From: Klebsormidium nitens
Taxonomy: Eukaryota; Plantae; Klebsormidiophyceae
Length of the DNA stretch: 64,000 nucleotides
NCBI GenBank assembly: GCA_000708835.1
Contig: DF237093.1
Location: 34,973 to 98,972 of the forward strand
Reading direction: 5' to 3'
The notes under the pieces are model-generated. The model was not told where the DNA came from. It was given only the letters and a program-made list of their open reading frames with translations, and searched no databases. Position numbers and translations under genes: made by a program. Of this stretch, positions 1 to 34,764 are shown one piece after another (positions within the stretch are counted from its first letter, which is position 1; each line of letters begins with the position of its first letter).

Positions 1-2977
1 CATGTCTTCGAGAAGCGGTTACTGACAATGAACAGATTAACGCCCACCTGCTCTCAAATTTTTATGTTATGAGCAAGAGCACGAGGAGAAGAAGTCGAGA
101 GCAACTGAAGTAAGGTTGGACCCCGTATGGAGAGGACATGTCCTGTAAAAGAAAGTATGCTTGGTAAAATGTAAGAAGCCCAAGGATGCTATAGCAAATC
201 TGACCGACGAACCGTCCCATAGGAACGGCGAAGATGCAGTCGAGCCACGGGCTGCCCTTGATGGCCAAAGACTGAAGAGCGTTGCCAGCGATAATTCTTG
301 CTTTCCGCCATTTCGAGCGACGTTTTGAGAAGTTTACATGTACGCTGAGCACCCGTTGCTGACAGCTTCCCCGCAGGACGGAAGGGAATGCAATCCAAGA
401 AACACCTTCGGTGCTCTAAAGTTCTCCCTAAGTGGGGCTTTGACAAATCGTCTCAATCCGCTGATTTTTAGAGGCCGAAAAAGCCCGCTCACCGTCTTGC
501 CATCCTCAGCCATAGTGATTAACATGGCCTGCTTGTGTAGCTCCGCCCCTCGCGGCGAGGAGACGCACGCCCGCTCCGGGTCGCTCAGATCTCGTGTGAA
601 CTTCCGGCCGTAAGCATCTTGGAACCCGGCCTCGGCAGACCTGCCGACCATGGCGGCCATCAGGGAGCTGCCGTACGCGACGAGCCCCCCGGGAAGATGG
701 TGCAACATCTGGAAAACAGAGACACGTCCTGAGAAGGAGACCGGTAGGAGTCCCCACCGTCAGGTGGAAGTTAGCATCGTGAACATCGGCTGACGTGGCT
801 GTTATTGGAGACGGTTTCTATCCGGCCGGAAGATAGACCACTTGAGGACTTTGCCCATCCAATCAAGGAGGTGCTCAGAGTTCGGTGGCTAATTTTTCTA
901 TCAGTATCAGCGAATCCTCGTTTTGGTGCATGAGAAGAAAGCCGAGCACGCAAGGGAGTTAGGGAAGCCCTGAGAGGCACGATACCCGACACGTCTCAAG
1001 CTTTCTTATGTACCTTGCCGATTGCTGCGGCCCTGCATACCCAGCATCAGAATACTAGATACTGAAACACTTTCAGAATCTCGACAAAAATCAAGTCACT
1101 CGCACATGACTACTTCAAGGCTCCAGCAATCATCTTCTTACTTCACGAGCGGCCTATCAACGACAAGCTGTCTAGTTTCCTGCTGAGATAGGGCTTCTAA
1201 CGTGCCATTTGAATGCGTACCTTCAGCTTCCAACGCACGGCCGGGCAGCTGACCAGGTTCCAGGGCGCCAGGAGCACCATGCGGCCCCGCACCCGCTCCG
1301 GGGCGCGCACCGCCAAGCCAGCCGCAAATAAGCAGCCGCACGAGTGGCCCATAAGACCGAATTTCTCGATGTTCAGCCGGTCCAGCAGCTCAAGCACACA
1401 GTCTGTCAATGGTAAAAGGCGTGTTTAATCGCTTACATTCTTGGGCGGAAAAGAAGAGTGTGCTGCTCAAAAGCTTTCCCCCGTGCGCAGATTGTTGGAT
1501 GTGAGTAGCCAGTTTGGCTGATACGGCATTCTAAGGTCCCTACCAATGTTCGTGGATTACGAAGCTTTAAAAGGGAGAAGAAAATACGACCCTGAAAGGT
1601 GGTCCCTAAGAAGTTCAGACGACTGTAACTGTCGACATCTCTCCAGAACGCGCTCGATAACCAGAGAACTTTTATAATCAGATCTTCAATCAGAATCAAA
1701 CAAGGAATAATCTTGAGCCATTCAGAAGAGCCGAACTTGGCGTTCAGCAAGGGTCCTGATTGGAAAATCTTGCATACTTTAACCCGTTCACGAATCTACA
1801 GCTTCAAGTGCACTGGGCTCAGAAACGCCCGCAACTATTGAGTAGATTCAGTTGGTTTGCCTCACCTGCAAAATTTAGCACATTCAAATTCTCCGGGACG
1901 ACCGGCGTCGTCTTGCCCCTCCCTGGTCGATCCACACAGATCAGGCGCAGGTGCAGCTTTAGCAGCCCTTCTTCCAGAAAGAGTCCATACAGCCGGTTCC
2001 CACCCATACCTGTGAACATGACAACTGGAGCGCCCTGCACCAGAAGCGACAGACGTTCGAAATATTCAATTGGGCCCCGTTACTCTTGATTCAGATTCTT
2101 TTGAAAGTGAGTTCCTTGTTTTTGAGTCTCCAAGAACCAGCATATCCAGCGGGAAAAAGCACACTTTCTGTGCAACGCCAAAACGTTGTGTAGATGAACA
2201 GGTGAGGCGAATTGACAGGGAGCAGAGCTGGGGGAGGAGAACTACGTTACGCAAAGGGCGGCGACCAGATGAGGAAGTGAACGTGTTGCGTGGACTGAGT
2301 CTCATCTTACGCTGGCTGGTCTGCAAGCGGTCATAGATAGTAAGCTGGAAGAGCTTTCCAAGAGACGACCATGCAGTTTCAGCTTTTCTTTAAGGAGATA
2401 TAGCCCCTACAGCAGCATACAGGAACCCGTATCACACAACCTGGGAAAATGGGCATGGTAAAATCGGGTCCAACACATTCCTGAAGAATTACTCAGTAGA
2501 CCTTGTCTGCATACAACTAAGCTTATCAAGATTACTTCAGACGAACCTGAACCAGCGGGTACGCACCAATGAATTGAGCGACAGTTGTCAAATCTCTACT
2601 GCAGTCAAGGAGATATATGTTGCTGATATTCACAAGGTGCCTGAGGCAGTGATGGATAGGGTGGTATACGATTACACTAAGCATAGAGCGCAGGCAATGC
2701 TAATAAAATAGTAGAGGAATGGCTACGTTAGCTCCTCTATTGCCCTTCTGCAGGCTGTGTGCAGGTGTCCCTGCTTCCTCCCCATTCCAACAGATTCTGG
2801 CAGGAGGTGCATGATACTATTCAAACGTCACACCTGGGGGTCGCCAACTTCCGAGTAACTGACGATTGTGCCGCTTTTTGACAGTTGCTGCACCTGGCAC
2901 ATGCGGGGGGATTGGAGCAGCTTCCCAATCTCAGCAGCCATGCCAGAACCAGACGCGCCATCGGACGCCCCCGACAT
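1..2977 (-). CDS. Alpha/beta-hydrolase fold protein, multi-exon; the 3' end probably runs off the window start and the first exon is tentative
   Basis: Exon ~1819-2040 encodes PVVMFTGMGG...LRLICVDRPGRGKT. Exon ~1197-1409 encodes ELLDRLNIEKFGLMGHSCGCLFAAGLA (G-x-S-x-G nucleophile elbow). Further exons near 490-710 and 230-290. Tentative first exon 2977-2894 (MSGASDG...RMCQ|gt). Confidence 0.8.
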
Positions 2978-3808
2978 TGGAGACCTCCCAGAGAACTTCT
3001 AAACGATTCAAAGCATCTGGAGAGGAAAAGCAATCAAGGGAGACTTATGGAGGCTGGCAGACTGGCAATCTTTGAAAGATACGGCTAAGTTTTGAGCTGC
3101 AAATATGGTTGTGCACATGAACAGCTTAAAGAACCGCCTGGGAATTGCACTGCCGTCGTAGCCAGCAGGTCCCTGCTAATCCAGCACTTTGACAAACTCT
3201 TGTCACAAAAGCTTGCAGCTGTGCTGGGGCCAACAGAATTGAACAACGTCGTTACTGTTTTGATGGCAACCAGCAGACCCTAAATCATTGCGCAGCACAT
3301 GCGCACTGCGCCTCAGCATCGGCCTGAGTCCAGTTGCGTTGAGCAGTGTCCTCTACGCCGACGGCGACGGCGACGGCCCCAAAATCAGGTACACGTTTCT
3401 GCACTGAGCAACTCTGCGCAAGCAAGCATGCATGATGCAGTTCAGACTTCCAGTCGTTGGTAACGGAAGAGGACTTCGAAAGCTGATGCCTCTGACGTCA
3501 CAACCATCTGAATGGAAGCCTCATGGATTGCCCGCGTCCCATACGTCAGCACACGCTGAAGGGACCCCTTTCCCGCCCCCTGGGCAGGGGTCGGGCCCCG
3601 TCGACGAAGGCAGCTGGCCGTGCATGAGCTTGCTTGCAAGTTGCACAAACCCATTTATAGGCTTTCTGTTGCATTCCTGATTCATACAATCCTCCGTCTC
3701 ATCTCAAAGCGCCATTGTCACTGGCACTACTCGTGTCTCGTCCTTTCTTTCTTCCAGTTTCAGCTCACTGTCCTGCTGCAGCTCAATTCACACCATTTTC
3801 CGCTGACC

Positions 3809-4285
3809 ATGGGCGGCAAGGCCAAGAGCTACATTCGCGAGGGGGAGCCCCACCTCAAGCCCTTCATTGTCGTGCGGGGCGCAGACAAGGCGCTGGAGTT
3901 CTACCAGAAGGCGCTCGGCGCAGAAGAGCTCCATCGGCTGCGCTCGCCCACCGGAAAGGTGGTTCATGGGGCAATCCGCATCCAGGGCTGTCTCCTCATG
4001 ATTGCAGAGGAAGATGCTGAGAATGGGTTCAAGTCTCCTGAGCTCCTGGGCGGGTCAGCAGGAGGATTTGCTGTGTACTATGAGGACTGCGATGCGGCGT
4101 TCAAGAGGGCGGTGGAAGCGGGGGCAAACGTGGTTCATGAAGTGCACGATCATTTCCATGGGGAGCGGTGCGGGACGATCCAGGACCCCTTTGGGCACCA
4201 GTGGGCGATCACGACGCTGATTGAGGATCTGACGCCGGAGGAGGTGCAGAAAAAGATAGACGATATGATGGCACCGCCGTCGTAA
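3809..4285 (+). CDS. VOC/glyoxalase superfamily protein, PhnB-like, intronless, 158 aa
   Basis: ATG at 3809 (accATGg context), in frame with ORF 3620-4285. Motifs PFIVVRGADKALEFYQKALGAEE, HGAIRIQG, AFKRAVEAGA, GTIQDPFGHQWAI and EDLTPEE are typical of the bacterial PhnB-like VOC family. Confidence 0.9.
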   Translation: MGGKAKSYIREGEPHLKPFIVVRGADKALEFYQKALGAEELHRLRSPTGKVVHGAIRIQGCLLMIAEEDAENGFKSPELLGGSAGGFAVYYEDCDAAFKRAVEAGANVVHEVHDHFHGERCGTIQDPFGHQWAITTLIEDLTPEEVQKKIDDMMAPPS

Positions 4286-7200
4286 GTGGGGCCGTATTGA
4301 GTTTGTAAAGCTGAGAATGACAATGTTGAAGGGTTTGTTCTGTAATGTATACGTCTTGCTTAATAGCACAGCCCAGGAGCAGCTGCTGCCCAGCTGCTGA
4401 CTTGTTGAGCTTGTGAGTAGTGATAAAATTCCGTACAAGTTGCTGTAAGTGGTCTAGAAATTTTCACTTAAAACCTTAAGATTGCTTACTATATCATTAG
4501 TCTTGTCTTGTGAATATGAGAGTTGGGGTTGACAAACAATAGATGGACGTGGAAAATTTCGCTGACAAGATACTCTAAGAACATACTTTGAATAGTATAT
4601 GCACAGTTTCAGATCCTCTATATCTGCCCAATCTTCTTTCCCATACACTCCTGTCGGCTTGATTGAATGCTGGCTCCTTCCCGGACGCTGATCAGCACGC
4701 GGATTGCAAGGGCAGTGTGGATCTGGACCATCAGATTGGAAGAACTTGCGTCTGGGTTGGAGCTTGATGCTTTTGAAGCTCTTGAAAGTTGGTTCAAATG
4801 TATGATGAACATTTGACTGTCTGTCATTATGGAGGCATGAATCCTAAGTGATTCCATGTGATAACCCGTCGTGCATGGCCCACTCTGTTGAAATTCCAGG
4901 CATGGGCTGCAGCTACTTCTGCGCTATCCTAAACACACAATTGGTTCGTGTGCTCACAAGGACCACTGTCTGAGGGGTGCATATGGTGGGCTGTAATGCA
5001 TGGGGAATGATTGGCATGTGATCCATCTCGACGACAGTAAATCAATTTCGATAGCAAGCACTGCACGATCATGCAGCCCAGTGGGCTTGAATGAATAATG
5101 CATCGTAACTATCAAACAACTTCGAGATCAACTTGTGGAGCAAGGCGACCGAGCTAGGAGCAGCAGTGAAGAGATAGAATCAGTCGAAGTGAGAGCTATC
5201 TTGCACAAAGGACCTTGGAAGGTAGAGAGCAAATCCATGACAGTGCACGAGTCCAATGATTCTCGTGCCAAAATTATTGAAATTCCCCTGATTCAGTGCA
5301 GGCCGAGGAGCGCAGCCGGATGCGCCTCTGCGCATCTTGACCTCACGAGCCTCGATCAACGTTATCAATACAAAGTAGTTTATGTGCGGGCTCTGTCAAA
5401 GGAGACCAGTGGCTTAGCGATCAAATGCTCGGGTGCCTGGATATCAAATCTGGACAGCTCAGAATTGTCTTTTGACCTTAGACTGCATTTCCTGGGTGTG
5501 TACAGTAATATGTATGTGATGTTCCCGATTCCTAATTCAGCGCGTCGGCCCCTTCAGACCATCTCCCAAACGTTCTGGTAACATTGCGCGCCGCTCGACG
5601 GCGCAACTGGACACACGTGACGAGTTCACATGAGTCCGCAGCTCAAGCACGGAGACCTGGAGGTTTCCAGCAAAGTTGCTTTGCTTGGCCCTCGCTTGCT
5701 TGCGCCGAGTTCAAACCGGCAGGAGGAGCCGCTGATTAGACAGAACTCAACACCTTTCAGAAAGCGAAGCAAGCCATCGATCTATCGATCGTGAGCCAGC
5801 TGGCACCTTTTCTATGGTACATTCAGCAGGCCACACTGGCCCCCGTGGCTTTACACATTTTCGAATTCAAAAACATTCTCCTTGTGTTTCAGGGCGTTCC
5901 GCTTGACCCAACGAATCGCCAGTACTGGAACTCGTTCTCAAGCCGCTCCAAGCGCAGCGCTGCGTGGCGCGCACCTTTAGAGGGACGTTGGCGCACCGTG
6001 TCTTCAATGATGTCGGCGTGCGCGAAGGCGTGACTCTGGCCGACAGTGACAACGCTCGGTCTGATTGACGTTGGTGTTTTTGCAGGGGGACACTCGGCGG
6101 CACCCTGAGAGGAGGCGCTCTCACTGACGGTTGTCAGTTGGATAAGGGGCCCCTTGCACGCGCGCAAAAAGGTGGAGGGCTGGTCGTTCGCGGAGCATCA
6201 TACGGAAATCCGCCCGACTTACGAGGTCAAAATTGAGATGGACTTCGCAGAAGGCCTGACCTGGGTACTCGGGGAAGAACGGCTTGCCTGTATCCTCAAA
6301 ACCCTCTAACTTCTTACAGCTAATAGTCAGTCCCGATTTTGAAAGCGGCCGTGCTTGCGGGCAAGATCTGGATTTTTGCTGGAAACAAGAATCGAGGACC
6401 CAACTCGATGAATCAACCTATCTGCTTTTCTTGTTCGGAGCCGCTCTTAATTATCGACGCTATCAAGAGGTTCAATTTGGTTGTGAAGACATATTCAGCC
6501 CCGAACTGACTGAGCGGACTTCTAAGATACCGGTCTACGTGAGCTCCTTGAAAAACTGAATTAGAAGACAGCCGCCCAGCTTAATTACGGGACCGCTTTG
6601 GAAGGAAAACCCGACTTGTTAACACCGTGCCCATTCTCCTTCTTCAAAGCAACTCCTTCCGGCTTTGAAGGACATCCACCACACCTAGACGGCTGCAGAA
6701 ACGCAGAGCCGACAACTACGATAATCCATTAGTTGGATGAGGACTTTCTATGGTCAAGCTTACAACCCCCACCTGATTTACCTGAAAGCACATCAGAGCG
6801 GTTCAAAAGTTCATCACGTCTTGTGCAGTCGCGTTCTCACCAAGCCGCTCAGTTCCGCTTGTAGATCGGGGAGAAGTCTCTGGGGTCCGGGGCGGCCAGC
6901 ACCAGCTTTCCCTGACGACTTCCCTTGGAATCTTGCACCGGGCCATGCGAAGAAGCGCAGCTCGTTCGCTTGAATTGCGCGCGAGCACGTGCACTTCTTC
7001 AGTTGCAGAAGATCAGCAAGTCCTGCAGGAAATCAGAGACCTGATGGGCAGCTCACATCGCTTGACCCTCGTTCCCTTCGTATGGTCCACAAACCTGCGA
7101 AGCAATTCTTTTTGTGATTCCGGGGTTTCAGTGACGCATTACAGGGAGTTGTGTAGGCTCTCAAAATACCGCTCTCAGCTCTGGGCGACTTCACCGTGCA

Positions 7201-8600
7201 AGTTGGAGAAGAAAAGGGAATAAGGTCAGGTAACAGATTGCAGATTATCAGGTCATGTCTATTCCACTCTCGATGCTTGCGGCCTCAGGAATTCTTCATA
7301 CTAAGGCGTGCGGCGTGTCAGAAACTTTGCCAACAGATTGTACAAGTTCATTTGGCATGTTATGAAGCAGCCTTTTGGAATTACAGGGGTCGACAAGCAC
7401 AGAAACAAGGTAGATTGAGATGTCGAAGCTCGTTCCTGTCTTGACCGAATTTGGTTCTGCAGTAGACCAGATTGAAATGGTAGCAAGCAATCAAGCAGAG
7501 TGGAGTCATTGATTATATTCATCAGAGATTCTTAGATTGAGTCATGTACCGTCAATTGGAAAAGCTCGGAAGCTCGCTGCGCCTCTAAAAGCACAGACCT
7601 TCGAGCATGGCGCATCACAGGTCCTGTTCAAGTTGTACGAATAACCCTTCAATCATACATGGCTTGCAGATGCATTTACTCAAAGAAAACAGCATAATGA
7701 CTCATCGATTGGAAGATGAACTCACTTCGTTTAGCTGACATTTGAGTTAAACCCTCGAACCTGTTTGAGTAGATGTTGCTTACTGGTTTGCCAGCTTAGG
7801 GAGCAAGAGCGGCATCTGATGTCCACCAGTACTGAACCACTCTTGGAGGGCTGGCCTCTTTTGGGGACTGGCCTCCAGTGCGAAAATGACTTGTACTTGG
7901 AAGCGCGGGCCCGAGATAGAGCGGCTTCAGGAACAATGGCTCTACATAAAGCGCTTGACCGTATGAAACTGAATGCGACCGCCGATCTGACGTGGTTCTG
8001 ATACCTGAACTAATGGAACTGCAGGGAGGCGAGAACGGGGGCCGGGGTCAAGGTGTTCAATGTCGAAGGCCGGTCGGAATCCTCGTTGCATCAATCTGCT
8101 GCGCTTGTTTGTGAACTCTGGTACGTAATTCGTTGCCTTCAACGGACGGGCTTTCTGAGAAGGTTAGAAAGTATAACCTACAGGACTAGAGGACCATCCA
8201 AAATCTAAAAAGTCAGTTCCCGGGTCAGATGGGGGTCAGATTTGTTATTTTCCCTGGTGAGTGGAGGAGGGCGCCTCGGGGGCGCCTCCCCCCGGGCCTC
8301 CCTAGTGGGCGCTCATACAGTGAGGTGAGCAGGTGCAGGTCGGATGCACGCACGGCCGCGACTTTTGTTTGAACTTGAAACTGTCAAGCTTAAACATCTG
8401 AACGTACAGTTAGAAGTGAAGGCGGCTGGCCGCTGCATGCGTGGCCGGCGCCCGGCCGGCCGCGCAAGGTTACGTCCGCGGCGGCCGTATTGCGCCGCCT
8501 AGTGGGAGGGGTTGGGGTTTGAATTTTCAGACCGCCGTACGCGGGCCCGCCTGGCCGCCTGCTCGCGACTAGTGCGCGCATTTGTCCAGGGGTGCTTCGG

Positions 8601-8610
8601 TTTAGGGTTT
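8601..8610 (+). promoter_or_regulatory. Telo-box (TTTAGGGTTT) upstream of fusion gene copy 1
   Basis: Exact plant telomere-repeat motif ~210 nt upstream of ATG 8817, just downstream of a GC-rich tract. Confidence 0.4.
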
Positions 8611-8816
8611 GCTCATCATTCATCATTCATGCTTCGCCTCTGATATCTAGCTGAGCGTGAACAGGGGCGCTTCCAACACCTAGCAGGGCGCTTTTGATAT
8701 GCATCTTTCCAGCGCTTGTGAACATCCGTCTTTGATTGACACTGCCAGACGAGGATTTTGTTCATGAAGCTGTTTAGACGGGATTATTGGATTGTCGTTG
8801 AGCACTGACGGAAGGA

Positions 8817-11318
8817 ATGGTGCAGCTGGGGAAGTGTTTACGAGTCAAAGGAGTTGGCAAGTGAGTTTCTATTTTCTTCGCTCGTGATGAGATCCTCCAT
8901 TCTGCATGTTACAGAGCAGCTTGCAACCAATCCATTGAGATGCTTTGAGAGCATGGTAGGTGTTTACTGAAGGCCTTGTTGGAAAGGACTGCAGATCTGC
9001 ATCACTAACGAGGTTGGCATATTTGCCACGGTTTGTGCTAAGAGGATTGTGTCATTGATTTGGGTAGCCTCTCACAAACTTTGGGGGCAAGGCAACTCCT
9101 TCCATCAGTTCTGTGATCTATGGCTTGTTTAACAAGGACACTGACAATATACAAATGTTTTCATGATGCAGCGGCGTAACCAGTATTGATGGCTGTCAGG
9201 TAAGCGATTAGCAGCGGGTATGGCTCTTATTTTTACTCTTCAAAGCTAATGCACAGGCAGCATTGGGTATCGTCAGCTTTCTAAGTGAAACTGGTCAGAG
9301 TGTTCCCCAAGTTCTACATTCAGTCCGCTTATGGTCAAAGCACCTTGAGCCAGGTTCTCGAACAGAGCACTTTGAATGGGCTCTTCTAACGTAGGTCTGG
9401 TTCTTTTTACAGACATGCTCAGGAACTGGGGCCCATCTGTTTCTCGTGTCCGCAGGCGTTCTCCCCCAGGCCCAAGAAACCCGAAAAGTGTGCGGCCTGC
9501 GGCTGCCATGCCTCCTTTCACCAACGCCTCGACGGGTCAGGCGCATACACTAGTGCAGATGCAGGGGCCGGTGTGCCTGGACCGGTAGCTGCCAGCAGCC
9601 AACCCCCTGAGTTGGCCATACTTCCAAAGCGAGGGCAGGTCTCCGCAAGGGGAGTCGCTCGCGGTGGCGCACGGAAACAAAGGAGCGCTCGGGTGCCGAA
9701 GACAGGGGGCGTGAGAGCAGAGAAGGCAGGGGCGGAAGTGGAGAAAGCAGGCGGGGGGGATGCGGAGAAGCCTGCAGCTGCGAACCGACCAAAGCGGGGA
9801 CCTGGGTCGAGGGGGGGTAAGGTAGTGGTTCGAGGTGCCGGAAGAGGCCGGAAGTCTAAACAGCTCGTGAAGGCGGATGGAGGAGCTTCCGGAGGGAAGT
9901 CCGCCGAAAGCGTCGTTGTTGAAGAGTTTCGGAGAGGGTCTAAGATTGGCGAACAACTGCTCCGGAAGGTAACTTCTGTTAAGGGGCCCGCTTCGAAGAA
10001 GATGGAAGGAGATGCGTACATGGGCCCTGGATCCAGGATGTTGACGATTTCCCGGAAGGCTGCACGGCTGGGGCTGACGGTGGACCACGTGGCCCCCAAG
10101 GTCGGGAAGGGCGAGGTCGACGAGTTCACAATAACCGAAGCGGCGGCAAAGCTGGGGATGAATCTCGATGTCAGGATCCCGGGCGAAGAGAATGCGACGT
10201 CGCTGCAGAGAGCCAGGACGATCGCCGCAAAAGCAAAGGGGCTTGGGTTGGTTTTGCCGGAGAAACCGACTGAGGAAGGCGGAGTCGGGACTGCTGTGCC
10301 TGGGTTCGCAAAGGCAAGTGCGGCTATGTCTGGAAGTATCGTGGTCGGGACGGGCATTGTAGATCTGACAGCTGAGGGGGAGGCGCAGGGGGCAGGGACG
10401 AAGAGGAGAGCGGCTGAGGAGATTGCAGGGGATGAGAAGAAGGCTCGGCCAAACTTTGGGGGGCGAGTAGAGGCTTGGATGAAGGCTGCGTTGCAGAAGT
10501 CGTGGGAGCAGGAGGGGGGTAGTGCACAGCAGAGCGGGGAGGAGGGGGAAGCGGGGTCTTCTGCGGACTCGATGGATGCCCTAGGTCAGGAAGGCATGGG
10601 GCGTGGAGATGCGGACTTGGGGGTGGGGCTAAGCGGCCTGGTAGTCGGGCAGGTGGGGGTACGAACTGCGGGCAAGGCGGGTGCGGCCGTGACGGAACCC
10701 AAGAAGTTTGGGGACGGAATCCTCTTTGCGCGCAAGACCCTGGCCGACCTTCTAAGCGAGAAGGCATGGCTGGAGAAGGACTTGGCGTTCCAGGAAGTGG
10801 ACTTTCAAAACAAGCACCTGTTCTTCCTGCGCTCGAAGCTGACTGCCAAAGGCGTCATTGACATGTACGACGCGCGGTTGTCGACCAGGATAGTGGTGGC
10901 GTATCTGGGCGGGCATGAAAAGGATCTGGCGGCAGTCAAGCAGCCGGTGGGCACGGTGCGTGTTGTTACGCAGAGGCCTTTCCCTTGCGAAAAGAAGCCT
11001 CTTGTGGCCGAGTGGATTGAGAGCAAAAACGGGTCCAACGTCGCGGAGGTTAGTCATCTGCTTGCACTTCAAGAGTATCGAAACGGGTCAGTGTCAGTCC
11101 CGTTGTTGGCTTACGCATACATGCGCATATTGAAACCGGCAGATGTCAAGTACGTTGTCATAGTGACCCAGCAAAAGTTGGTGGAGCGGTATCTCATGAA
11201 GCACTTCCTGTTTCTAGGCTTTGAGTTCATCGAGCAGACAGGGAACGGAGAGTGTGTGCTGGCACTAGATCTGGAGAAGGCGGTGGGGTTGCTGTATGGG
11301 CCATGGAGGTTTACCTGA
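8817..11318 (+). CDS. ZF-HD-type zinc finger / GNAT-like acyltransferase fusion, copy 1; exons 8817-8860, 9172-9199, 9456-11318 (644 aa)
   Basis: All junctions are GT-AG and phase-consistent. Spliced N-terminus MVQLGKCLRVKGVGNGVTSIDGCQAFSPRPKKPEKCAACGCHASFHQR matches the ZF-HD finger pattern (YRECLKNHA...DGCGEFMP...CAACGCHRNFHR). C-terminal block DMYDAR...VGTVRVV...FPCE...AEVSHL...EYRNG...FLGFEFI is GNAT/LuxI-FeeM-like. Confidence 0.85.
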
Positions 11319-11547
11319 CTTGTACAGTAGGAGGCTCCTAGAAGGTTCCTCCACATTGGATAAGGAGAGAGACAATTTTTGAGTCACAGTCAAAAGACAT
11401 TGAAACTTCATCGAATAGATGTCAACGACGGTTGTTGCTGTTTCGAGCTTTAGCTATTCATATGTAACCGGTCGCGAAGATTTTCTGGTCTGCCGTTTAC
11501 AATGGTGCCATGCTCAGGATGGAGTGAAACGGTCCCTCTCGTGATAT

Positions 11548-11766
11548 NNNNNNNNNNNNNNNNNNNNNNNNNNNNNNNNNNNNNNNNNNNNNNNNNNNNN
11601 NNNNNNNNNNNNNNNNNNNNNNNNNNNNNNNNNNNNNNNNNNNNNNNNNNNNNNNNNNNNNNNNNNNNNNNNNNNNNNNNNNNNNNNNNNNNNNNNNNNN
11701 NNNNNNNNNNNNNNNNNNNNNNNNNNNNNNNNNNNNNNNNNNNNNNNNNNNNNNNNNNNNNNNNNN
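11548..11766. other. Assembly gap (219 N)
   Basis: Run of N in the sequence. Confidence 1.
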
Positions 11767-12504: not shown

Positions 12505-14306
<1,802 letters not shown>

Positions 14307-32433: not shown

Positions 32434-34764
32434 TCATATAAGCAGGTTTCTATGTGCTTTCTCTAGGTTTACAGCGAGCACCGACCCTGTAGTACCAAAG
32501 TTTTCGATGAACTCAAAGCCCAGAAACGACAAGTGTTTGAAGAAATATCTCTCAACTTGCGTCTGGGTCACTGACAACAAAACACAATTTACACCCGCCG
32601 GCTTCAGAATCTTTAAGTAGATATAAGCGAACAAAGGGATCGTCACAGCCCCGTTCCGGTATTGAGGGAACGTATACAAGTAGCTGAGCTCCGCTACGTG
32701 CGTGCTGATGCTCCGCCCCTCGAGCCATTCTGTCACGGCTGGCCGCCGCTCACAGTCAAATGGCCGTTCCATGACCACGCGTATCGTCCCCAGCGGCTGC
32801 GAGAGTTCTACCCGCTCTTTCTCGTCCTTAGCCAGATACGCAATGACCTTCTTCGTTGACGACCTGGCATCCAGGGTATCCGAGACGGTTCTTTGATCGA
32901 GCTGCGATCGCAGGATCGTCAGGTGCTTATTCTCAGGGCCCACCTCTTTGAAAGCCAGGTCCTTCTCGCACGACTTCTTATTGCTCAAAAAGTCCGCCAG
33001 CATTTGTCGTGCAAAACCGATCCCGTCCCCAAACGCTGTATATTTACTCGCACTGCCAGTTCCCGCCTCTTCCCATCCGATTGTCCTCGTCTTCGACTCC
33101 TTCAGCCACTTCCCCTTTCTCGCACTGCCTGCTTGTTCTCCTTGCTGCATTGGCGCCCCTCTCACTTCAAACAACAGCAGCCCCGCACCTCTTCGCACCC
33201 CCCTAGGCTCGAACCCCGTTGTCCCCCGCCCCGACGGACTTTGGCCAGAGGTTCCTGGCGCGCTCTGCATCCAAGTGTGGCCAACGCGAGCCTTCTTCGC
33301 CGGCCCCGCCAGTTCTTCCCGTGTCCTCCTTTTCGCGCCGCTCCTAGTTGCCTCCCCCTCCGTCAGGTCCACCACACTGGCCCACTCGGAGCCTCTCCCC
33401 ACCACCGATGCTGCAAAGCCCCCCCGCCCGAACAAGGCGGAACCCCCCCCTCCGGCACCCATCACTTTGTCAGGCAACACCAGTCCCAGCTCTCCGGCCC
33501 TCTCCGCAATCGTCTTAACTTTCGGCACTCGCTTGCCCTTCTTCCCTCCGTCCTCATCATGACGACCGGCGCCCAGCTTCACTCCCCGTAGCGCGGCAAT
33601 CTGTGCAATTGTCAGCTCCTTGGGCTTCCCTTCGCCCGGATAGTTGGGCTCCACCGTGACGCCCAGCTGAGCGGCCGTCTCCGCGATCGTGAGATCGCCC
33701 TTTCTGCAGTACCTGCTTTTGCCGGCGGCCCCACCAGAAGTTGCCCCATCACTTGGGTCCAATCGGCCCGTACTCACGGCAGTAGCTGCGCCCCCCCATA
33801 CGGCGCCTGCCGTTTGCTCCGCACGGGTTTGCCTCTGACCAATACGCCCCCCCTTCCGACCTCTTTCCCCGCCGCTTTGATCTCCAACGGCCTGACTGCG
33901 TCTGGGAATGATTGGAACCTCGTCCACATTGACACCAACCAGAGGGATCCAGGGTGCAACGCCCCCAGGCACCACTCCAGTGTCAATGTCCAGTCGCTGG
34001 TGAAAGGAGGCATGGCATCCGCAGGCCTCGCACCTCTGGGGATTCTTGGGCTTAGGCGAGAACGCCTGTGAACAGCGGAGCCAAGGGGGAACTGCGTCAA
34101 CTGCTTGCAACTGACGATTGGACGTTAAATCCAGCATGGTTGAATTGAACCAGACAAGAGCCCCGCATCATGCAACAGCACATGGTGCTTCAGAGCAGCG
34201 ATTCCTAAGATGCTACTTGCCAAAAGCGCAAAGAAGAATGCAAGTCAGAAGCTAAGACTGAAACGCATTTGGAAGTGACCTGATAGCCCCATGCATTCGA
34301 TGATGTTTGGCACCAGAATAATGCAGCGTACCTGACACCCATCATAAACAGTGACGCCCCTGCAAGAGAAACAAGCTGTGAAGTCAAGACTTTGCTTACA
34401 GAAGTTGTCCAAACAGTTGTTGTGCACAAGCACTCTAGGAGCCCACCAAAGTTCAGCATCAAGGGCAAACTGCATCTTTAAAATATTGAAACAAGGCTGT
34501 ATGGTAAGCAGCAGCTTTCTTGAACCTACTCAACTAACAGCATCACATTGAACTCATTGGGCTGGTCCAGTGACGGCACACAGTGTTTGGTGCCATTGCC
34601 CTATCTGATTGCAGCAAGCAGAATAGCCAATCATCGTTCAGAATGGGCCTCTAGATAAACATTGAGAAACACACCAAAACGAGATAGCCAAAAAAAATGA
34701 TGCACGGATATTAGACTTACTTGCTGGCGCCTTTGTTGCGCAGACACTTCCCAAGCTGCGCCAT
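32434..34764 (-). CDS. ZF-HD-type zinc finger / GNAT-like acyltransferase fusion, copy 2; exons 34764-34721, 34359-34332, 34065-32434
   Basis: Spliced N-terminus MAQLGKCLRNKGASKGVTVYDGCQAFSPKPKNPQRCEACGCHASFHQR. Exon sizes (44 and 28 nt) and phases are identical to copy 1. C-terminal domain is collinear with copy 1 (FGDGI.FAR..LAD, EKDLAF.EV, GT.RVV..RPF.CE, YRNG, ILKPA, VERY..KH..FLGFEFIE, LEKA). Confidence 0.85.

Follow-up and report, generated by a model that had tools for sequence, protein, structure and literature searches.

The 64,000-nucleotide (nt) stretch of the Klebsormidium nitens genome analyzed here (contig DF237093.1 of assembly GCA_000708835.1, positions 34,973 to 98,972 of the forward strand; hereafter the window) encodes, at 10701-11318 and a second time in a paralogous gene, what we take on balance to be a lineage-restricted, highly divergent N-acyltransferase domain of the Gcn5-related N-acetyltransferase (GNAT) fold, nearest to the bacterial N-acyl amino acid synthases of the FeeM type and related more loosely to the LuxI/OlsB group. 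The domain is transcribed and spliced as the C terminus of a protein that starts with a zinc finger-homeodomain (ZF-HD) dimerization finger, and it is kept in two old paralogs by strong purifying selection. A reading made earlier from the DNA letters (the sequence-only reading) had proposed a bacterial-derived acyltransferase captured behind a plant zinc finger.

The open frame that ends at 11318 (copy 1) is 100% identical to K. nitens KFL_001440110 (P0001, 644 residues), whose public annotation registers the ZF-HD dimerization-type region only (Pfam PF04770) and leaves the C-terminal domain unregistered. Mapping of P0001 onto the window and translation of the last exon gave the following layout.

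8817-8860, plus strand: exon 1 of copy 1, with the start codon and the beginning of the ZF-HD finger (P0001 residues 1-14 map here)
9172-9199, plus strand: exon 2 of copy 1 (28 nt), in the middle of the zinc finger, placed by the mapping of P0001
9456-11318, plus strand: exon 3 of copy 1, intron-free, with the end of the ZF-HD finger (to ~9527), a linker of ~390 residues, the GNAT domain and the stop
10041-10256, plus strand: three repeats of ~14 residues in the linker, [LFR]TI[SAT]xxAAxLG[LMV]x[LV], conserved in both paralogs and both species
10356-10448, plus strand: an IVDLT-x-EGEA block and then KRR-x10-KKAR, conserved in all four full-length proteins
10701-10778, plus strand: N-terminal helix FGDGI.FAR..LAD ahead of the GNAT core, with invariant residues and predicted as a helix in both structural models
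10779-11315, plus strand: FeeM-like GNAT core, with D54/D57 in 10860-10877, R87 in 10947-10967 and E116/S118 in 11040-11060
10860-10877, 10947-10967 and 10977-10991, plus strand: motifs DMYDAR, VGTVRVV and PFPCE of the translation
11040-11060, 11076-11087 and 11211-11234, plus strand: motifs VAEVSHL, YRNG and FLGFEFIE of the translation
11181-11234, plus strand: motif-B-like stretch ERY..KH..FLGFE.IE, part of the GNAT core

The paralog, copy 2 (P0004, 567 residues), occupies 34764-32434 on the minus strand and has a three-exon layout like that of copy 1.

34720-34764, minus strand: exon 1 of copy 2, start of the ZF-HD finger (P0004 mapping)
34332-34358, minus strand: exon 2 of copy 2, start of the ZF-HD finger (P0004 mapping)
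32434-34065, minus strand: last exon of copy 2, with the GNAT domain at 32437-33042, the linker repeats at 33475-33693 and a block resembling a nuclear localization signal (NLS) at 33286-33375

Transcription of copy 1 was followed in Logan RNA contigs from 4 runs of 4 studies. These contain both splice joints, 8860>9172 and 9199>9456, each with GT..AG borders, and no joint within 9453-11540, in agreement with the earlier statement that the domain lies in one intron-free exon. One contig extends from exon 1 to 10479, and others cover 10545-11540. No single RNA contig bridges the finger and the GNAT domain, the contigs of all runs breaking at ~10470-10570; as the reading frame is continuous there and no joint was seen, this break is probably an effect of assembly or coverage and not an intron.

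The six ordered motifs named in the sequence-only reading all occur, in that order, at 10701-11318 and in the paralog at 32437-33042 (minus strand), and the alternative letters that it gave trace to copy 2 on the minus strand. In copy 1, the block 10701-11315 encodes 205 residues and is followed by the stop codon at 11316-11318; residue numbers (D54, E116, and so on) refer to this domain. The family compared comprises five members: P0001 and P0004, their orthologs P0002 and P0003, both from one single other sample, and P0005, a more distant fragment whose contig also bears the RPS27a gene found downstream of copy 1 in the window. The invariant residues, shared by all five, are D54, D57, R59, G84, T85, R87, E116, S118, Y126-R-N-G129, and most of FLGFE.IE. 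Directly after E-x-S the family has H, Y, or S, so this position, which the sequence-only reading equated with the LuxI Arg, is not conserved.

The two copies share 43% identity over 423 residues (tblastn) and 53% within the GNAT domain. Since their similarity is confined to coding sequence, the duplication is old; indeed, it took place before the second species, which has both copies, split off. Between ortholog pairs (Nei-Gojobori), the ratio of nonsynonymous to synonymous substitution rates (dN/dS) was 0.14 for the GNAT domain of copy 1 and 0.09 for that of copy 2, versus 0.31 and 0.39 for the respective linkers. In both genes, therefore, the GNAT domain is under the tightest constraint and evolves under strong purifying selection. 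Together, this constraint and the GNAT folding described below establish that the block at 10701-11318 is more than a chance arrangement of motifs.

In an hmmscan of copy 1 at E<=10, the only Pfam families returned were FeeM (PF21926; E 7.4e-4, 19.8 bits) and Acetyltransf_5, the OlsB family (PF13444; E 0.044, 14.9 bits, below the gathering threshold of 22.4). P0005 also matched FeeM (E 0.017, 15.3 bits). The sole NCBIfam match was to the PEP-CTERM/exosortase-associated acyltransferase TIGR03694 (E 0.022; 14.2 bits versus a cut-off of 112), and the weak matches to PF13444 and TIGR03694 cover the core strands. Language-model neighbors in the ESM Atlas formed clusters at 0.94-0.95, most of them with PF21926 and nearly all bacterial, and PF21926 stood on 6 of the 10 rows of the Atlas shape search. 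FeeM, to which identity is 11-16%, is therefore both the better of the two Pfam matches and the commonest family among the Atlas neighbors.

The GNAT fold of the domain is secure at the level of predicted structure. AlphaFold2 modeling of the copy 1 domain from a 4-sequence alignment gave a pLDDT of 65 and a pTM of 0.65 (one good model of five), and a further run, targeted at the paralog, reached a pLDDT of 56; the GNAT order of strands and helices is present in both models, whereas a non-GNAT fold had been named beforehand as the outcome that would speak against an acyltransferase. A Foldseek search of the PDB placed FeeM (2G0B) first, followed by Arabidopsis thaliana NAT9, the coenzyme A (CoA)-dependent N-acyl homoserine lactone (AHL) synthases BjaI and MesI, and generic GNATs. 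In an exhaustive alignment, independent of Foldseek, against 48,161 PDB representatives, the Z scores were 12.2 for FeeM, 11.4 for LasI, 11.0 for TofI, 10.5 for Elp3, 10.4 for Naa60, and 10.3 for EsaI, and all 50 top entries were GNATs. In every PDB structure comparison 2G0B ranked first, with small margins over other GNATs; the preference for FeeM/LuxI recurs consistently, albeit narrowly. The profile, solved-structure, and Atlas lines are partly interdependent, yet all converge on FeeM, and we consider it probable, with good confidence, that the domain is homologous to the FeeM/Acetyltransf_5 group.

The small margins also bring in an ordinary, vertically inherited eukaryotic GNAT of the Naa or histone acetyltransferase kind that evolved fast in Klebsormidium, its likeness to FeeM being a by-product of the shared fold. 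Naa60, Elp3, the NatA/NatC subunits, and A. thaliana NAT9/NAA60 are within ~1-2 Z of FeeM, the architecture looks nuclear, the gene has spliceosomal introns, and its G+C content at third codon positions (GC3) is native. However, none of the ordinary families (Acetyltransf_1, _3, _7, _10, or any Nat family) matched in Pfam at E<=10, where FeeM and Acetyltransf_5 did; neighbors by language model and by shape are mostly PF21926 clusters; and an exhaustive profile search found no eukaryotic relative. Furthermore, a regular-expression search found the acetyl-CoA loop Q/R-x-x-G-x-G/A in none of the five members, a difference from eukaryotic protein acetyltransferases (Naa60, the NatA/NatC catalytic subunits, Elp3, and Gcn5), to which there is likewise no profile match. 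We therefore regard such an origin as improbable.

LuxI membership was examined with a reference set of nine plasmid proteins, TraI of pTiC58 and eight diverse AHL synthases, whose alignment has the invariants R25, W35, E44, D46, D49, R70, E101, R104, and G159 (TraI numbering). When both sets were aligned with MAFFT without guidance, D54/D57/R87/E116 coincided with LuxI D46/D49/R70/E101, and these were the sole invariant columns. The D-x-x-D, G-x-x-R, and E-x-S elements are thus shared with the LuxI family (PF00765; LasI 1RO5, TofI 3P2H, EsaI 1KZF, and TraI of pTiC58), which would favor an AHL synthase making mimics of quorum signals. However, at least 4 invariant columns were also reached by 14 of 150 column-shuffled controls (9%, p about 0.09), so the line-up, which is what the sequence-only reading had noticed as a resemblance in motif order to AHL synthases, is not significant alone. 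The other five of the nine invariants, the N-terminal R25 and W35 plus E44, R104, and G159, have no counterpart in the Klebsormidium domain (at R104 the family has H, Y, or S); Autoind_synth (PF00765) was not matched by the domain family in the Pfam hmmscan at E<=10; and hhalign of the Klebsormidium profile against the nine-LuxI profile gave a probability of 0.1%. Accordingly, we rejected identity as a LuxI-type AHL synthase, a reading that is largely refuted at the sequence level and to which we give hardly any credence. Of the earlier description as LuxI/FeeM/OlsB-type and not a typical plant GNAT, the GNAT fold is supported, as is a place nearest to the FeeM, Acetyltransf_5, exosortase-acyltransferase, and AHL-synthase part of the superfamily and away from the usual plant Acetyltransf_1-type GNATs; membership of LuxI is not supported.

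At the position expected for the CoA P-loop, the pyrophosphate-binding loop after strand beta-4, the family has YRNG (11076-11087) within an invariant Y-R-N-G-[SA]-V. The absence of the canonical acetyl-CoA P-loop is in keeping with the FeeM/LuxI type and with a donor different from plain acetyl-CoA. FeeM likewise lacks this loop, and the invariant Glu116 may correspond to the Glu on its central strand. A modified P-loop has been described as characteristic of FeeM and SbzI-type GNATs (PMC11685415). The missing loop and the extreme sequence divergence from all known enzymes might instead indicate a GNAT-like module without catalytic activity that serves solely in binding, for acyl-CoA sensing or protein interaction. 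Against this, active FeeM- and LuxI-type enzymes also do without the P-loop, the Glu, Ser, Arg, and Asp that match catalytic-core positions of FeeM/LuxI are invariant in all five members, and the dN/dS of the domain is 0.09-0.14, so that we judge loss of catalysis quite unlikely.

Returning to an active FeeM-type enzyme, the domain would take the acyl group of a thioester and attach it through an amide bond to a primary amine. The part of the base, filled by a Glu in FeeM and LuxI enzymes, would fall to Glu116 on the predicted strand 114-122. The donor would probably be acyl-CoA rather than acyl carrier protein-bound: the protein lacks an organellar presequence and bears a basic motif of nuclear type.

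The finger at the N terminus is a genuine ZF-HD_dimer (PF04770; residues 3-48), scoring 46.1 bits in copy 1 and 50.5 bits in copy 2 against a gathering threshold of 27, so the plant zinc finger reported ahead of the domain is borne out in both copies. It reads C-L-R-V/N-K-G around the first His of land-plant fingers, for which we take the consensus to be C-L-K-N-H, and still scores well above the cut-off. In plants, the ZF-HD finger is described as mediating dimerization with ZHD and MIF proteins (PMC3020774). The three linker repeats, which stand in tandem, drew only faint Pfam matches to Sigma70_r4, a helix-turn-helix family (E 0.16-0.22), and nothing usable in the ESM Atlas; a LysM-like row of the shape search (TM 0.27) was discarded as not meaningful. 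The repeats may form a module that binds nucleic acid or protein. Downstream, the conserved block reads I/V-V-D-L-T-acidic and then KRR-x10-KKAR; by pattern recognition it looks like a SUMO-interaction motif followed by a bipartite NLS. Together, the finger, the three linker repeats, and this block with its bipartite NLS-like motif suggest a nuclear, partner-directed role.

As to the acceptor, the tether to a dimerizing finger, the three conserved linker repeats, and the NLS-like motif lead us to lean slightly and tentatively toward amino groups of proteins that the finger and linker would bring near; the main alternative, somewhat less likely, is free amino acids, for which the family sets the precedent, or amines, with N-acyl amides as the product. 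A related alternative, named first in the sequence-only reading, is a FeeM-like N-acyl amino acid synthase that makes lipo-amino acids, with the finger serving only to dimerize the enzyme. FeeM is the top match by profile, fold, and language model, and all characterized members of the nearest group (FeeM, OlsB, and LuxI) acylate free amino acids or their derivatives (see also PMC11685415). However, the attachment to a finger of transcription-factor type, plus the conserved repeats and NLS-like block of the linker, argues against a small-molecule role, no partner carrier protein is in evidence, and FeeM membership is itself below threshold. On this evidence, we hold a lipo-amino-acid synthase to be somewhat unlikely.

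Several observations weigh against the reading that we favor, a divergent FeeM-type acyltransferase behind a ZF-HD finger. The FeeM match of copy 1, at 19.8 bits, is below the Pfam gathering threshold of 27, so that formal membership of the family fails Pfam's own test; matches to FeeM are confined to the copy 1 lineage (3 of 5 members), with none for copy 2 or P0003. A sequence-profile search of the PDB at E<=10 returned nothing. Both structural models, with pLDDT values of 65 and 56, are of modest confidence and were built on alignments of 4-5 sequences, and FeeM leads Naa60, Elp3, and SpeG by only ~0.2-1.7 Z, margins that the tool treats as near ties. Glu116, invariant and on a predicted strand, is a putative equivalent of the catalytic Glu of FeeM and LuxI, and nuclear localization, donor, and acceptor are likewise predictions.

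Relatives of the family were sought in several collections. A HMMER profile search of 1.84 billion protein representatives found only Klebsormidium-type family members; P0006, a repetitive protein in which one 32-residue stretch matched six times, was rejected as spurious. In a word-index protein search, the domain alone had no match, and the five-sequence profile at E<=10 returned P0005 only. Pattern scans of 185,579 prokaryotic genomes, IMG/VR viral contigs, and JGI metagenome contigs yielded no relative. Plasmid matches by tblastn (E<=10) were noise: in Klebsiella within an ISCR1 transposase region, in Bacillus in no open reading frame, and in Rhodococcus between genes. One FeeM-like Atlas cluster is 55% Nucleocytoviricota, but a giant-virus route is not supported, since a BFVD fold search gave generic GNAT matches only. 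The distribution is thus patchy, with the family seen only in P0001-P0005 and in none of the other eukaryotes searched.

A prokaryotic origin of the domain is plausible. The restriction of a prokaryote-type family to one lineage fits an old transfer and extreme divergence equally, and no tree can be built, since the sequence searches detected no homolog in bacteria, viruses, or other eukaryotes. GC3 is 0.70 and 0.64 in the domains of the two copies versus 0.64 and 0.65 in the linkers, with no foreign base composition, so any transfer would be old. One could imagine that a prokaryotic FeeM-type synthase was acquired in ancient times by the Klebsormidium lineage and fused to an ancestral ZF-HD finger before the finger met the homeodomain, with a long-chain acyltransferase directed at chromatin or transcription factors, or N-acyl amino acid signals acting on soil bacteria, as the outcome; we consider this scenario speculative and improbable in its entirety. 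Bacterial capture as proposed in the sequence-only reading has no phylogenetic support at present, and its AHL-synthase variant fails the family tests.

No literature on KFL_001440110 or on a ZF-HD-GNAT architecture was found. The domain is a very divergent form of a known kind of enzyme in a new architecture. It differs from FeeM in belonging to a eukaryotic protein with an intron-containing gene, in which a ZF-HD finger and a long linker precede it; in an extra conserved N-terminal helix (10701-10778), which falls outside the FeeM-aligned part (model 27-202 versus chain 3-188); and in having no carrier-protein gene adjacent, its donor being likely acyl-CoA. With Acetyltransf_5/OlsB (PF13444) and TIGR03694 it shares the GNAT subgroup to which FeeM also belongs, at scores far below the curated cut-offs. 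The proteins resemble land-plant ZF-HD/MIF proteins (PF04770) in the N-terminal finger of both paralogs but differ in lacking a homeodomain, which is replaced by the repeat-bearing linker and the GNAT domain. Klebsormidium serves as a genomic reference for how green plants came onto land, and ZF-HD proteins are regarded as transcription factors specific to plants. In the present genes, what the ZF-HD finger is coupled with is no homeodomain but an enzyme domain whose type is otherwise seen almost exclusively in prokaryotes. If the domain is active, streptophyte algae would gain either a targeted protein acyltransferase or a way to make N-acyl amide lipids, and the finding would bear on the role of the ZF-HD finger before its fusion to the homeodomain.

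Some further features of the copy 1 locus were recorded. The coding sequence of the ZF-HD finger (8817-9527) is spread over three exons, of which two are very short, at 44 and 28 nt. Contigs of low depth at 8883-9201 and 9172-9482 span both introns (depth 3-7 versus 23-88 for the spliced form), which points to a minor unspliced transcript fraction or to DNA carry-over. The region 10470-10570, the site of the break in the RNA contigs of every run, is a G-rich, purine-rich tract. An assembly gap of 219 N at 11548-11766 begins 230 nt past the copy 1 stop, in or just beyond the 3' untranslated region. Downstream, a ubiquitin/ribosomal protein S27a gene (12505-13200, minus strand) lies tail to tail with copy 1, and this neighbor is also present in contigs of two other species (L001:1657-1893; L004:9547-9786), so that synteny is conserved.

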